Source: Glycera tridactyla (lineage: Eukaryota). Taken from it: a DNA stretch of 64,000 nucleotides. A program made the position numbers and the translations under genes. Positions 9,374-51,811 of the stretch are shown here, piece by piece; position 1 is the stretch's first letter; each line of letters starts with the position of its first letter. The notes under the pieces were generated by a model. That model had not been told where the DNA came from, ran no database searches, and saw nothing but the letters and a program-made list of their open reading frames with translations. Location: positions 29,450,001 to 29,514,000 of the forward strand of contig OZ286462.1 in assembly GCA_965644265.1 (NCBI GenBank), read 5' to 3'.

Positions 9374-10468
9374 TACATGTGATATAAGATATGGAATATG
9401 TGTTACACTCATTGCATGTGAAAATATCGTCGAATGACCGATTAGATGACTGTCTGACTGGCACGTGGTCTAATGGGCATATCGCTGCATATTCAAACAT
9501 TCAATCAACCACCCAATCGATCAATTAATCAACAGATGGATCGATCGATCAATCAGTTGATAATCTAATCAAGTAATGAATTAAATTCTCGAATGCGCCG
9601 GCAGANNNNNNNNNNNNNNNNNNNNNNNNNNNNNNNNNNNNNNNNNNNNNNNNNNNNNNNNNNNNNNNNNNNNNNNNNNNNNNNNNNNNNNNNNNNNNNN
9701 NNNNNNNNNNNNNNNNNNNNNNNNNNNNNNNNNNNNNNNNNNNNNNNNNNNNNNNNNNNNNNNNNNNNNNNNNNNNNNNNNNNNNNNNNNNNNNNNNNNN
9801 NNNNNNNNNNNNNNNNNNNNNNNNNNNNNNTACGAGAAACTACACCAGGGCATCAAATTTGGTGATCAAACACCAAGCAGTTAATCCCTGCCCAATGATT
9901 TAGTGGGGTAATCACTTGCCCAATGTCTTCAACCTCAAACTTCTTCATTGTTAGAATTATTCCCCAGATGCTATTTCGGTGGCCCGAGAGCCCACATCAC
10001 GGCCCCTGACTCTAGGAGGGATACGTCTGGTTGATGCTTGATTGATTGGGCGTTGTTTGACGTCCTCTTGACACCACGTGGGCCATTCCAGGCTGACCCC
10101 CTCTCCTCCACGCATCTGGTTCGCACGGATCCCGGGCATGTTTCACAAGTGGGACCATCGTGCCCATTGAGCCAACAACTCCGACTAATGGTCTGAATTT
10201 CAAGAGGTACTTCAGGGCACAGAAACGATGATATTCATAATAATACATGTAACACTATCTGACATAATGATTATGACGATGATGATGATAACAACACTAA
10301 TGAAGATATCAATAATGAATAATGGTTGCAGTGATGGTCAATAATCAATACAACAAAGATCAATGATAGTAATACTGACACTCCTGATGATAACAATAGG
10401 TAGTAGAAATGATGATAATAATGATAATAATAATAATAATAATGATAATAATAATAATAATAATAATG

Positions 10469-10503
<35 letters not shown>

Positions 10504-10623
10504 TGGGGCTCACCCAACCAGAGGACCCAAGAAGACAGAATGTCTGACTTATAGGGAGATGGACCCATCTAACGACGGAACACAAAAACCAGAGAAAAAA
10601 CGCAAACGAAACCCTCCTGAACT

Positions 10624-11055
10624 CACATTTACCCACACGACAATGGACAATGCCCCTGTTTCCAAGGAAACAGGTGACGTCATAATGGAAAGCGCGGTAG
10701 AGCCAACAGATGTCACTCCGATGCCTACCAGTGCCAACAACACAGACAGACCACTGAGTAAATCAATTTCCGATTTTAATGTGCCAGTTTTCAAATTACT
10801 GCAGACTCACGCACAGAACAATGAATACCCAACAGTGAAAACACATTTACCAACACGACAATGGACAATGCCCCTGTTTCCAAGGAAACAGGTGACGTCA
10901 TAATGGAAAGCGCGGTAGAGCCAACAGATGTCACCCCGATGCCTACCAGTGCCAACAACACAGACAGACCACTGAGCAAATCTATTTCCGATTTTAATAT
11001 GCCAGTTTTCAAATTACTGCAGACTCACGCACAGAACGATGAATATCCAACAGTG
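10624..11055 (+). repeat. Tandem duplication, period 218 bp (10624-10837 and 10842-11055)
   Basis: Near-identical copies; MDNAPVSKETGDVIMESAVEPTD appears in two frames in the ORF track. Confidence 0.95.
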
Positions 11056-11690
11056 TCTACCATCGAGAGAGAAGAAATCGAATCTAACTACACGCCACCA
11101 TCGATATCCACTGAGCGAAAAAATCCAGAAGAACGAATAAGAAGACTTCTCAAGATGAACATCCCAAGAAAAATCCACACCAGCAGTCGACACCTCTATT
11201 TATACTGTGAAACCCCGGTTTTTCAGTCAAACCAACACTTAAAAGACTCCAGAACTTTGTGATGTTCTTGCATTTATACCTGAGTGTACAACACATCCAC
11301 CCCTCACCCACAACCAACACACACACAGAATAACACAATCACAATCACGCAATCACACAAATATCACACAACATCTCCACCTCTCGATTTATTGATTCAA
11401 ACCAGCTATGATTGTATTTAATTGATGTACGAGGTTCATTGAATCACGCAAACCCAATGAATGGACCCAATTCGGAATGAACAGTCATGAATATTCCGAG
11501 AACAAGTAAGATTAACAAACAATGGGAACCTGAACATTATGACAGAACAATAGGCCGTACGAGCCTATCACGCGATAGTAATATAGGTCACGCAATGCAT
11601 GATGGGTAACCAAGGACTATAAGAACAAGGGGCAGACTGAGACTCCCTCAGTTTGCCTTTGGTAGAACGCCGGTAAGCATACCTTACCAC

Positions 11691-11730
11691 ACACCTGACG
11701 AAGGCCAGCCAGGGCCGAAAGTACTCGTGT
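11691..11730 (+). ncRNA. Minimal type-I hammerhead ribozyme motif (Penelope-like type)
   Basis: ACAC-CTGACGA-A-GGCC-AGCCAG-GGCC-GAAA-GTAC-TC-GTGT: helix I ACAC/GTGT, core CUGANGA, helix II GGCC/GGCC, GAAA, palindromic helix III GTAC. Predicted cleavage after C11726. Confidence 0.8.
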
Positions 11731-11976
11731 ATTAAAAGGTACAAAGCTTCACCCAATCTACCAAGGCAAAACTACTTTATTCATTGAATATTTGTATTTA
11801 CTGAATAAATATACGAGCAGTTGTACAACTGTTGTGGTGTTTAGTGCTTATAAATATTACTACTTTTAAACACCACTTCTGAATTGCCGTGTGCAATCCA
11901 GTTGTACACACCCAAAGGTCCATCTCTCCAACAAATCCTCCACTTAAGCTTGGGCGTTGTGTCACTCGACAACTAC

Positions 11977-12010
<34 letters not shown>

Positions 12011-12011
<1 letters not shown>

Positions 12012-12352
12012 TGTGGAGGAAGAAGACCCAACGAATCACATACTCCAAAGTAGACGATGTATTCCTCTGGTTACATCATCATCAGTAGACAAATGGACAT
12101 GCAGAGAACATGCAGACAAGAGCGACTCGATACATGGCACACCGGGTACTTGATGAATATTACTAAGAAGAGCTCAGGCTCCGTGGAGACTCAGGGAGAG
12201 TCCACAAAGCTTTTCGGACTGTGTCCTCATCAGGTGGTATTTGATCTACCCAAGATACCTAGAGCCTGAGCACCAGAGGAAAGGAGCTGATTCCACTGGC
12301 ATCAGAAGTACCTAAGCTACCCTTCTGGGGGATAAGTACCCCCGATGTGGGG
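12011..12352 (-). mobile_element. Putative solo pLTR or retrozyme-like element bounded by (AAT)n
   Basis: 342-bp block between (AAT)11 (11978-12010) and (AAT)4 (12353-12364), with a central minus-strand hammerhead. Confidence 0.5.
12202..12237 (-). ncRNA. Minimal type-I hammerhead ribozyme motif (Penelope-like type)
   Basis: Minus strand reads CCAC-CTGATGA-GGAC-ACA-GTCC-GAAA-AGCT-TT-GTGG: helix I CCAC/GTGG, exact CUGAUGA core, helix II GGAC/GTCC, palindromic helix III AGCT. Predicted cleavage between 12206 and 12205. Confidence 0.85.
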
Positions 12353-13277
12353 AATAATAATAATTGTATAATTCTTTATTTTACTTCGCCCGTTACATAA
12401 AATGAATATGTATACAGTCGCCCCTTAAAAGGAGCNNNNNNNNNNNNNNNNNNNNNNNNNNNNNNNNNNNNNNNNNNNNNNNNNNNNNNNNNNNNNNNNN
12501 NNNNNNNNNNNNNNNNNNNNNNNNNNNNNNNNNNNNNNNNNNNNNNNNNNNNNNNNNNNNNNNNNNNNNNNNNNNNNNNNNNNNNNNNNNNNNNNNNNNN
12601 NNNNNNNNNNNNNNNNNNNNNNNNNNNNNNNNNNNNNNNNNNNNNNNNNNNNNNNNNNNNNNNNNNNNNNNNNNNNGATTATAACATATGACTTCGTATC
12701 ACATCTTACATCCTGTGACTACCACAGTCAAAACTAGAAATACTCTTTGTCAGTCTCCCACTTCCTTCTGTACAAATCAGCACCTACAGAGCTCGAACTA
12801 CCTGGTGGACAATTTTTGAAACAGCGATATGTCTGTACTATAGAGTGTACCAGAATCACGCACGTAAGCTGGTATGGTTTGAGAAGAATGTAAAGATAGA
12901 GGGGACAGGTTTTTTGTCTATGAAGGGTGATAGCCACAAAGATAAGGGCTTCATAAGGCGTCGTAATTTTTAGTTATTTCAGCGAGGTTTATCCTAAGAC
13001 CGCCGACCCCCCCCCCTCCCCACCCCGAGACGTGCTGTCGTTGCTGTTTCTGGTTACCATGATGATACTAAGATAGTTGATGATGTCTGCAGCGAAATGG
13101 CTGGATGTTAGGTATTCCAATCTCTGTCCCAAGTGATATTGTCACGAACCCCCTTCGGATTTTCACATATCATCACAACAGCAATAATTCCACCCATTAA
13201 AATAGAAGTCATCATGAGGGCGCAATGTCTCTCAGGTGATTCCGGGAAATGATCCAACGCAAACATATCGGCATTGC

Positions 13278-13556
13278 CTTATCTTCGACGGGATATCACT
13301 TTTTCATCACTCTATCTTGTTTTGTATTCTCTTTGACAGAATATCACTATTTTATCACTCTATCTTTTTTTGCATTATCTTTGATGGAATATCACTTTTT
13401 CATCACTCTATCTTGTATTGCGTTATCTTTGATGGAATATCACTTTTTCATCACTCTATCTTGTATTTCGTTATCTTTGATGGAATATCGCTTATTCATC
13501 ACTCTGTCTTGTATTGTATTATCTTTGATGGAATATCACTTTTTCAGCACTCTATT
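13278..13556. repeat. 48-bp minisatellite, about 5.5 units
   Basis: ATATCACT recurs from 13293 to 13533 (240 bp = 5 x 48). Confidence 0.92.
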
Positions 13557-50444: not shown

Positions 50445-51811
50445 GTATATGCAGATTGTTCTCCTCTGATAACCCGGAGAATCTACCTGTCTCCACCGCC
50501 CTTAGATTGTTCCATTGCTTGGCCAAACCTATTCTGACCTACAATGCCGACATATGGCTGATGGATACAGACAAAAAAAGAGAAGCTGGCAAATCAAGAG
50601 CCCAAAAATCTGCCAAAGACTTTGACACCCTCGGTAGTGTGGAATCAACTGTATTTGAACGAATCCATTCACGCTACATCAAAACAGTCCTTGGTGTCAA
50701 AAGAACAACCAGCAGCAACGCTGCCAAGCTTGAAGTCGGCGAACTGCCCCTTGAATATAACATTAATCTACAGAGTTTGAAAAACTGGCACAGGATTCTA
50801 GGTTTGGATGACACCCTGGTACATGAAGCACTTCGCTGTGCAACCAAGATGCACAAAAATAAGATCCATTCCTGGGCATCTTATATCCAGAACATTCTGA
50901 ATCTGACCGACACTGGCCTAAAAGTGGACGATATGTCTGCTGGCAATCAGCCCCTCCCCCTTTGCATAATCAAATCTAATCTAGCTAGGTACCATGGCTC
51001 TATTGGACTGAACTCCCTCAACTCCCCTACTGGAAGAAAACCTGGCCAAGGCAACAAGCTACGCACCTATGCTAAATTCAAGAAAAGTTGTGACTTTGAG
51101 CCCTACCTAAACCATGTTAAGAGTTTTTCAAAACGCTCTGCCATCACAAAATTACGTCTAAGTGCCCACATATTAGAGATTGAGCGAGGCAGATTCACGA
51201 AAGTGCCCGCCAACCAGAGATTCTGTGTCTTCTGTCCTAATAGTGTTGGTGATGAAGTCCACTTCCTTCTAGACTGCAACTACCTGTTACATGACCGTCA
51301 CCCTCTTCTAAGAACTTGCTCAATGAATATCCCCAACTTTGATCATCTACCACCCACCACCCAATTCACATCGATCATGAAGGCCGACATCAAGCCTGTT
51401 GCTCTTGCATTGGGTCATTATTGCTCAACAGGTTTTGAACAGCTGAGGGCAAACATTAGCTCAGAGGGCAAAACATAGTATCAGGAAGAAAATACCTTAC
51501 CCTGTCATTTGCACAAACATGCACAAAACATCCAATGATAATACTCACTCATATATCCATGCAATTCGGCTTATGTCATGTGTATGTGCAATAATTGTTT
51601 GAGTCTGTAAATTGAATTTGAACCACGGTTTAACTCTTATGACTATGTGTGCGACTCGACTGTATACTGTTGAATCTGAATTTGAATATATTATAACTGT
51701 CTATTGGTTTTGTCTAGTTAAGATTTGTAGTTACTTTATTTCATATATTAGTGCCTATGTCATGTATACTTGATACGGCGAAATAAAGTCTTTTGAATTG
51801 AATTGAATTGA
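50445..51811 (+). mobile_element. 5'-truncated RTE-X-like LINE with an open C-terminal ORF2 frame, 3' UTR and (GAATT)n tail
   Basis: 356-codon open frame 50408-51478 with LFxxLxKPILTY..IW, LGVKRTTS, KLRTYAKFK..FEPYL, KLRLSAHILEIERGR, RFCVFC...GDEVHFLLDC (CCHC). AATAAA at 51782 followed by (GAATT)n. Clade assignment is from motif recall. Confidence 0.85.

Follow-up and report, generated by a model that had tools for sequence, protein, structure and literature searches.

In a 64,000-nucleotide stretch of the Glycera tridactyla genome (contig OZ286462.1, positions 29,450,001 to 29,514,000 of the forward strand; hereafter the window), an (AAT)n microsatellite tract is interrupted by two sequence blocks, termed block 1 and block 2, each carrying a compact hammerhead ribozyme motif and arranged convergently. 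We consider it likely that the two blocks arose by independent insertions of unrelated, non-autonomous hammerhead-bearing retroelements into one (AAT)n tract through target-primed reverse transcription starting on microhomology, with enzymes derived from Penelope-like elements (PLEs) as the most likely driving machinery. All positions refer to the window unless preceded by a locus label, and both families were searched for in the window's own genome (2.04 Gb).

Sequence reading and Tandem Repeats Finder (TRF) yielded the order (AAT)n, a 1475-bp block with a plus-strand hammerhead, (AAT)11, a 342-bp block with a minus-strand hammerhead and (AAT)4, reproducing the layout of tracts, blocks and hammerhead strands given in a preliminary description of this DNA. 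The left part of the target tract comprises 29 units with 92% matches (10415–10502), enclosed and preceded by a degenerate AAT-like stretch starting at about 10267. Block 1 (10503–11977, plus strand) spans unit positions 1–1475 and represents a full-length unit of a young non-autonomous family. The perfect (AAT)11 at 11978–12010, the first AAT of which may have been templated by block 1, is the tract remnant between the 3′ ends of both blocks. Block 2 (12011–12352, minus strand, 3′ end at 12011) consists of the last 342 nt of a family of about 1.03 kb, and (AAT)4 (12353–12364) forms the right-hand remnant at its truncated 5′ end; unique sequence lies beyond it, and positions 12436–12676 are an N gap. 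Both block limits coincide exactly with the alignment limits of the respective genome-wide families. A direct comparison detected no significant similarity between the two blocks, in agreement with the earlier statement that they resemble each other in ribozyme architecture only. The individual block descriptions required amendment, as block 2 is the 5′-truncated part of an element of about 1 kb, block 1 lacks the 68-nt tail that separates units elsewhere in its family, and the plus-strand hammerhead contains an extra A.

Searching the genome with block 1 resulted in 109 scored matches of 682 candidates with 93–99% identity. A 28-mer starting at unit position 769 was present in 94 copies at about 27 loci on many contigs in an exhaustive search. 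The family usually forms arrays with a period of 1543 bp, composed of the 1475 bp seen in the window and a 68-nt junction tail beginning with AATATT, which was found only between tandem units and is missing from the outer ends, including that of the window copy. All 17 two-armed loci are arranged head-to-head, with minus-strand copies on the left, plus-strand copies on the right and the 3′ ends facing outward, and their arms contain up to 4–5 tandem units. The innermost two units are 5′-truncated at varied positions and directly adjoin each other with an overlap of 0–4 nt. Per 590 nt, we counted 0–5 differences within an array, 0–7 between opposite arms and a median of 9 between arrays. As the units are near-identical within and across arms, a given array appears to stem from a single event with a single template.

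Arrays of this kind could also result from satellite-like local amplification of a few insertions by unequal exchange or fold-back replication, in which case their structure would be uninformative about integration. Some palindromes are nearly symmetric, with centre truncations at 815/826, 79/72 and 728/742, and the unit numbers of the two arms are often similar (4/4, 3/3), as local amplification would have it. Many other centres are strongly asymmetric, however (1246/69, 1333/1025), and the same outward 3′ ends are found at the same junction motifs at no fewer than 27 loci (at least 27, on many contigs), a junction rule that solo and truncated copies follow too. We therefore regard local amplification as distinctly improbable.

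For block 2, the search returned 1110 candidates, of which 40 were scored, with identities of 82–94%. Other copies reach further in the 5′ direction, at varied lengths up to about 1.03 kb (e.g. L036:811-1839). They are mostly solo and 5′-truncated, so that the tandem-array pattern does not hold for this family.

The preliminary description had proposed to search the genome with each block and to tabulate the flanks. Both blocks proved to be multicopy, and other copies were found to be flanked by the same repeat. Flanks were expressed in element orientation, and in a strict test at least 13 of the 15 bases past the junction had to match the repeat, with the rest of the window and 20 unrelated loci as background positions. 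The test was passed by 22 of 28 block 1 3′ ends and 19 of 27 block 2 3′ ends, compared to 0 of 124,749 background positions, which bears out the suggested shared preference for (AAT)n as a target. By eye, 26 of the 27 block 2 3′ ends adjoin the repeat. Perfect (AAT)10 accounted for 108,025 in-phase matches in the 2.04 Gb, well under 0.1% of bases. The same repeat thus flanks copies genome-wide on both sides, well above background.

The outer 3′ ends of block 1 fall into three classes, namely ...CTACG followed by AAT(AAT)n, ...CTACGAAT followed by ATT(ATT)n, and an early end at an internal AAATATTA (position 1357) with (TTA)n behind it. The internal AATATT(A) site of the window copy is located at 11853–11859 (plus strand; family position 1357), an alternative 3′ end used when the flank is (ATT)n, and it is followed by a small hairpin read from the sequence, ATTGC/GCAAT (11881–11899, plus strand). 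AATATT is present twice, at the start of the tail and 124 nt upstream, with the same hairpin about 25 nt after each. The block 2 3′ ends comprised CCACAC AAT plus (AAT)n in 12 cases, CCACAC AAT plus (ATT)n in 11, CCACAC directly joined to (ATT)n in 3, and no repeat in 1. The exact 17-mer at the block 1 3′ end occurs in 45 genome copies, continuing into a tandem junction in 27, into (AAT)n in 6 and into AAT(ATT)n in 5; of the remaining 7, 2 run into degenerate repeats in the loci examined.

In element orientation, AAT and ATT flanks were about equally common for both families (12 versus 13 for block 1, 12 versus 14 for block 2). Furthermore, the two genomic flanks agreed in repeat strand in all 6 block 1 arrays whose two ends were both visible and in all 9 block 2 copies that are bordered by repeats at either end. 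Within these six arrays, the (AAT)n-facing arm ends at position 1475, whereas the (ATT)n-facing arm ends at 1357 or 1481. At the array C1:3648788-3652248 (pattern coordinates; hammerheads at 3649006 on the minus strand and at 3649750 and 3651252 on the plus strand) we observed perfect (AAT) of at least 10 units on the same strand on both sides.

These flanks bear directly on the idea that the elements themselves produce or carry the AAT repeats as tails. Shrimp genome papers report a close association between transposable elements (TEs) and simple sequence repeats (SSRs) and propose TEs as SSR carriers (PMC7878876), and the first AAT past an element is indistinguishable from the tract. A templated tail would, however, always read alike, in contrast to the equally common AAT and ATT flanks, and it would not account for the matching repeat strands at the 5′ and 3′ flanks in all 15 informative cases; tandem junctions, moreover, consist of AATATT and a 62-nt unique tail without any repeat. 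We give this explanation very little credence. The equal frequency of both flank types together with the matching strands on both sides argues instead that the repeat is a pre-existing target, and the flanks imply that the original insertion site would have been a continuous AAT tract. Two independent insertions into one tract, as put forward before, remain the simplest reading for two families that are unrelated in sequence and differ in age. The further notion of microsatellites as a 'safe haven' is a plausible conjecture.

The relative age of the two insertions follows from their nearest relatives, which are only 91% identical for block 2 and 99% identical for block 1, indicating that block 2 inserted first and block 1 later. 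In the proposed history, a 5′-truncated block 2 would have entered the (AAT)n tract on the minus strand in the older event. A full-length block 1 unit would subsequently have entered the repeat at the 3′ flank of block 2, splitting the tract into (AAT)~29 and (AAT)11. The convergent layout is then explained by block 1 having used the repeat next to the 3′ end of block 2, which was already in place. Nothing in the data speaks for the coupling through convergent transcription that the preliminary description had raised. A comparable arrangement was observed at C11:72131524(+)/72131998(-), where block 1-type and block 2-type hammerheads are convergent about 474 bp apart (window: 507 bp), which would be explained either by a duplication of the region or by block 1 making repeated use of the repeats around block 2 copies. 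A further block 1-/block 2-type hammerhead pair was noted at C4:9579983(-)/9581177(+).

The junctions suggest how priming might proceed. Target-primed reverse transcription would start on microhomology, using an RNA with AAUAUU near its 3′ end. With (AAT)n downstream, the nicked bottom strand ending in ...ATT-3′ would prime by pairing with the AAU of the RNA, whereas with (ATT)n downstream a nicked ...AAT-3′ end would prime by pairing with AUU. One RNA species could in this way be copied from both ends of the broken tract, and the two cDNAs would join head-to-head. The presence of both half-sites in AAUAUU would thus account for insertion in either orientation as well as for the head-to-head block 1 arrays with outward 3′ ends. 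The tail past AAUAUU would be copied only when synthesis continues into the next unit, either via template jumping between linear RNAs or via travel round a circular RNA. More tentatively, and with somewhat less than even confidence, we propose a bipartite 3′ module, consisting of the palindromic AAUAUU, with one repeat unit from each strand of the target, and the small conserved hairpin in the uncopied tail, that lets one RNA prime from both ends of an AAT/ATT break. If true, this would provide a concrete mechanism for head-to-head PLE insertions, which have long lacked an explanation, and would illustrate how the RNA, in addition to the nuclease, can determine microsatellite specificity.

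The choice of template deserves separate consideration, because the same elements and target are compatible with the retrozyme route, in which an RNA cut by the hammerhead and ligated into a circle serves as template for rolling-circle reverse transcription, each arm then being one cDNA made without jumps between linear templates. The up to 4–5 units per arm, their near identity (0–5 differences per 590 nt) and the hammerhead in every tandem unit are in line with a circular template, as has been proposed for the retrozymes of animals (PMC7229834). The 1543-nt unit, on the other hand, is far above the size of known animal retrozymes (170–400 nt), and of about 35 5′ ends, some 4 are found no more than 12 nt away from unit position 1, where about 0.5 are expected by chance. 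This clustering speaks for a linear RNA that begins at a defined position, and we consider the circular template a genuine possibility but a rather unlikely one.

A purpose-written motif scan (CUGANGA and GAAA cores, minimum lengths of 4 bp for helix I and 3 bp for helix II, cleavage at U-H and optionally one extra base after A9) identified exactly 2 hammerheads of compact type-I form in the window (64 kb) and 0 in 30 shuffles. The minimal type-I plus-strand hammerhead (11691–11730) consists of a 4-bp helix I ACAC/GUGU, the CUGACGA core, the extra A, helix II GGCC/GGCC, GAAA and loop III GUAC, with the predicted cut after C11726 (UC cleavage site). Its minus-strand counterpart, likewise minimal and type-I (12202–12237), comprises helix I CCAC/GUGG, the CUGAUGA core, helix II GGAC/GUCC, GAAA and loop III AGCU, and is predicted to be cut after the U opposite window position 12206 (UU cleavage site). 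The cleavage nucleotide H17 is C in most copies of the block 2 family and U in the window copy, both of which are cleavable. In both hammerheads helix III is reduced to the A15.1-U16.1 pair, closed by a tetraloop with a palindromic sequence, and the palindromes differ between the two (GUAC versus AGCU), as described before. This minimal form with a 1-bp helix III has been described from PLEs as well as from amphibian repeats, in the latter acting as a dimer (PMC7229834). In both families the hammerhead lies 200–250 nt upstream of the 3′ end.

With gathering thresholds, Rfam had no match anywhere in the window, and relaxing the cut-off to E≤10 did not bring up a hammerhead either. Minimal dimer-type hammerheads, in which a palindromic tetraloop sits on a helix III of 1 bp, fall outside the models, which explains why both motifs were missed, and we dismissed the Rfam silence as evidence against them. 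A long stem encloses the plus-strand hammerhead (11650–11771, plus strand; 131-nt fold, −42.6 kcal/mol, z = −5.2), and a longer enclosing stem is also found around the minus-strand hammerhead (z = −2.9). The 32-nt core of the block 1 hammerhead has 347 exact copies in the genome and its reversed control 0; for block 2, 265 exact copies, nearly all solitary, were obtained versus 0 for the control. Variation within the block 2 hammerhead among 27 aligned copies is located in loop II and at H17 (C/U). Thermodynamic co-folding of hammerhead pairs did not return a double-hammerhead fold, a result to which we give no weight. Both hammerheads are putatively active, probably as dimers through the palindromic loop III.

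The insertion architecture of block 1 corresponds to that of PLEs, with tandem units forming pseudo-long terminal repeats (pseudo-LTRs), an inverted 5′-truncated head-to-head copy and a tail extension. PLEs are known for tandem and inverted insertions, a 30–40-bp tail, minimal hammerheads and a microsatellite bias (PMC8557442), and animal retrozymes have been argued to be non-autonomous PLE derivatives (bioRxiv 10.64898/2026.07.22.740005). Based on this architecture, the blocks were probably mobilised by a Penelope-like element providing reverse transcriptase (RT) and a GIY-YIG endonuclease. The PLE-type reading of the preliminary description is hence retained as far as architecture is concerned, while the long copies linked to PLE RT/GIY-YIG open reading frames (ORFs) that it envisaged were sought and not found at 20 PLE loci. 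These top 20 GIY-YIG PLE loci have no sequence in common with either block and no AAT flanks. As neither family contains a long ORF or a Pfam match, the blocks are not autonomous PLEs and could at most be non-autonomous derivatives.

GIY-YIG PLE-type ORFs are abundant in the genome, with 4525 candidates and many open frames of 800–1000 aa, one of them with the domain set RVT_1, HTH_animal, DUF8422 and GIY-YIG. Another GIY-YIG PLE (L070:560-1000, minus strand) contains a hammerhead with an insert of about 150 nt in helix III (CUCGGAAU ... AUUCCGAG); its cut site is located about 45 nt before the 3′ end, which adjoins (TA)n, here (TA)10. Comparing exact genome copies, the 347 block 1 hammerheads contrast with only 145 copies of the body 166 nt upstream and 208 of the 3′ region (28-mer probes for the latter two). 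The hammerhead and 3′ module are therefore common to other families, and this suggests that the hammerhead-bearing 3′ module is exchanged between families. The best lead to a partner is C13:14002308-14015018, where pattern positions alone place the exact block 1-type hammerhead at four sites in the strand order − − + +, the spacing being 6081 bp in either arm. Such a palindrome of much longer units is a possible autonomous relative. Other widely spaced hammerhead pairs are located at C7:27355809/27363009 and C26:42253610/42260534. The first 610 bp of L021 resembled the start of a 4-kb insert but contain no ORF.

Several observations weigh against our interpretation. No element with RT and GIY-YIG that shares the 3′ module or the hammerhead was recovered, so that the proposed link to PLEs is one of architecture, and about 5 of 18 terminal 17-mer 3′ ends have no demonstrated adjoining repeat. 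The predicted cuts lie 251 nt (block 1) and 195 nt (block 2) upstream of the priming sites, from which it follows that the ribozymes do not set the insert ends; the role of hammerheads is unsettled for PLEs in general (PMC8557442). Conservation of the hammerhead columns in the 27 aligned block 2 copies (0.937) exceeds that of the flanks (0.890) only modestly, and compensatory base-pair changes were found in neither hammerhead among these 27 copies and the block 1 copies, the latter being too young to inform. The extra A of the plus-strand hammerhead, between A9 and G10.1, is non-canonical. The same extra A is present in the plus-strand hammerhead of chrysanthemum chlorotic mottle viroid (CChMVd), which is active at a moderately lower rate and thus sets a precedent for activity (PMC3705267), although this is a type-III viroid hammerhead without an evolutionary link to the block 1 and block 2 elements.

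A further point of this kind concerns the target itself. For long interspersed nuclear elements (LINEs) of the Dong/R4 type, (TAA)n is the insertion site in an ostracod crustacean as well as in insects, molluscs and cnidarians (PMC7998251, PMC3774820), and the blocks might be passengers of such a LINE with a (TAA)n-targeting endonuclease, the hammerhead being an unrelated passenger motif. The missing PLE partner would fit this explanation. The fixed orientation that would accompany a Dong-type insertion is, however, not observed, as the orientation is about 50:50, and we detected no LINE-like 3′ homology, with no Dong copy among the sequences compared. The 17 of 17 head-to-head arrays, the tail confined to positions between units and the minimal hammerhead are PLE hallmarks (PMC8557442) and are unreported for Dong. 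Passenger status with a Dong-type LINE appears improbable to us, and mobilisation by PLE-derived enzymes is preferred.

Within block 1, an internal tandem duplication (10624–11055, plus strand) comprises 2 copies of a 218-bp repeat with 96% matches. The repeat is present in one, two or three copies depending on the array, with resulting periods of about 1283–1325, 1502–1543 and 1761 bp. Because 218 is not a multiple of 3, a small ORF is split into 10559–10903 and 10861–11262. The 133-aa ORF and its upstream partner are hence fragments of one broken small ORF, which match only the family itself (open frames of up to 256 aa). With a single 218-bp copy, the reading frame would again be uninterrupted over about 160 aa, including a run of KKRKR. 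Block 1 units contain no long ORF and no Pfam match, small ORFs included, and the block 2 family contains no ORF of note and no Pfam match either. Block 1 displays a non-coding tandem-repeat pattern, with a hammerhead in every unit, 1543 bp apart.

At the C40 array (C40:27881544-27887461), about 6.9 kb separates the two arms. This segment contains LINE-like ORFs (L009:3375-4343, L010:3-740) with a weak GDSL-esterase match and an RT-like C-terminal motif, and probably represents an unrelated LINE that was either already present or arrived afterwards. Elsewhere in the window, a 48-bp tandem repeat (5.9 copies, 87% matches) is located at 13273–13555, shortly past the N gap, and long open frames are found at 24742–26496 (585 aa, minus strand) and 50306–51475 (390 aa, plus strand).

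Fragments of both families were also detected in public sequence runs under three organism labels. These runs are small and stored as assembled Logan contigs, which retain neither read ends nor strand information, and none is confirmed as RNA; no RNA ends, circular junctions or empty allele were seen in them. A tandem-junction contig was found under a second label, and one contig skips exactly 218 bp, corresponding to the single-repeat variant.

PLE integration is poorly understood with respect to tandem and inverted copies, the tail, the role of the hammerhead and the finding of microsatellites, and the two families described here provide a clean natural data set for it. As the junction motif is complementary to both target strands and each arm uses the matching half, the microhomology-priming model is directly testable. 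A trinucleotide repeat would join the known PLE targets, and insertion into repeats, as opposed to repeats borne by elements, directly explains some of the association between TEs and microsatellites that has been described for crustacean genomes rich in repeats. New with respect to published work are the trinucleotide target, the AATATT half-site rule tying each arm to a repeat strand, and arms of several tandem 1.5-kb units.

As to the known kinds of element, the candidates are PLEs and retrozymes, with PLE assignment being probable. With the endonuclease-containing (EN+) PLE clades Penelope/Poseidon, Neptune, Nematis, Hydra and Naiad, the blocks share partial tandems and an inverted 5′-truncated head-to-head copy, a short tail at one side only or between units, a repeated 3′ region that includes a minimal type-I hammerhead, and the microsatellite bias (PMC8557442). 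They differ from PLEs in lacking an RT/GIY-YIG ORF, in arms of up to 4–5 full tandem units and in their trinucleotide (AAT)n target, in contrast to the (TA)n, (CA)n and (C)n reported for PLEs.

Animal retrozymes without LTRs (non-LTR retrozymes) resemble the blocks as non-coding tandem repeats with a type-I hammerhead per unit (Cervera and de la Pena 2020, PMC7229834; Li, Clavereau and Pollet 2026, preprint, 10.64898/2026.07.22.740005). In the genomic DNA, this pattern is found in the block 1 arrays but not in the dispersed block 2 copies. Retrozyme units measure 170–400 nt, compared to 1543 nt for block 1 and about 1 kb, mostly solo, for block 2, and the hammerheads described here are of the minimal PLE type without loop-loop contacts, in palindromic arrays within microsatellites. 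Dong LINEs (R4 clade), finally, have the (TAA)n target in common with both families, including in a crustacean (PMC7998251), but they are autonomous elements encoding RT and a restriction-like endonuclease, with a ribozyme similar to that of hepatitis delta virus (HDV) at the 5′ end (PMC3774820), and neither head-to-head tandem arrays nor a two-way orientation has been reported for them.

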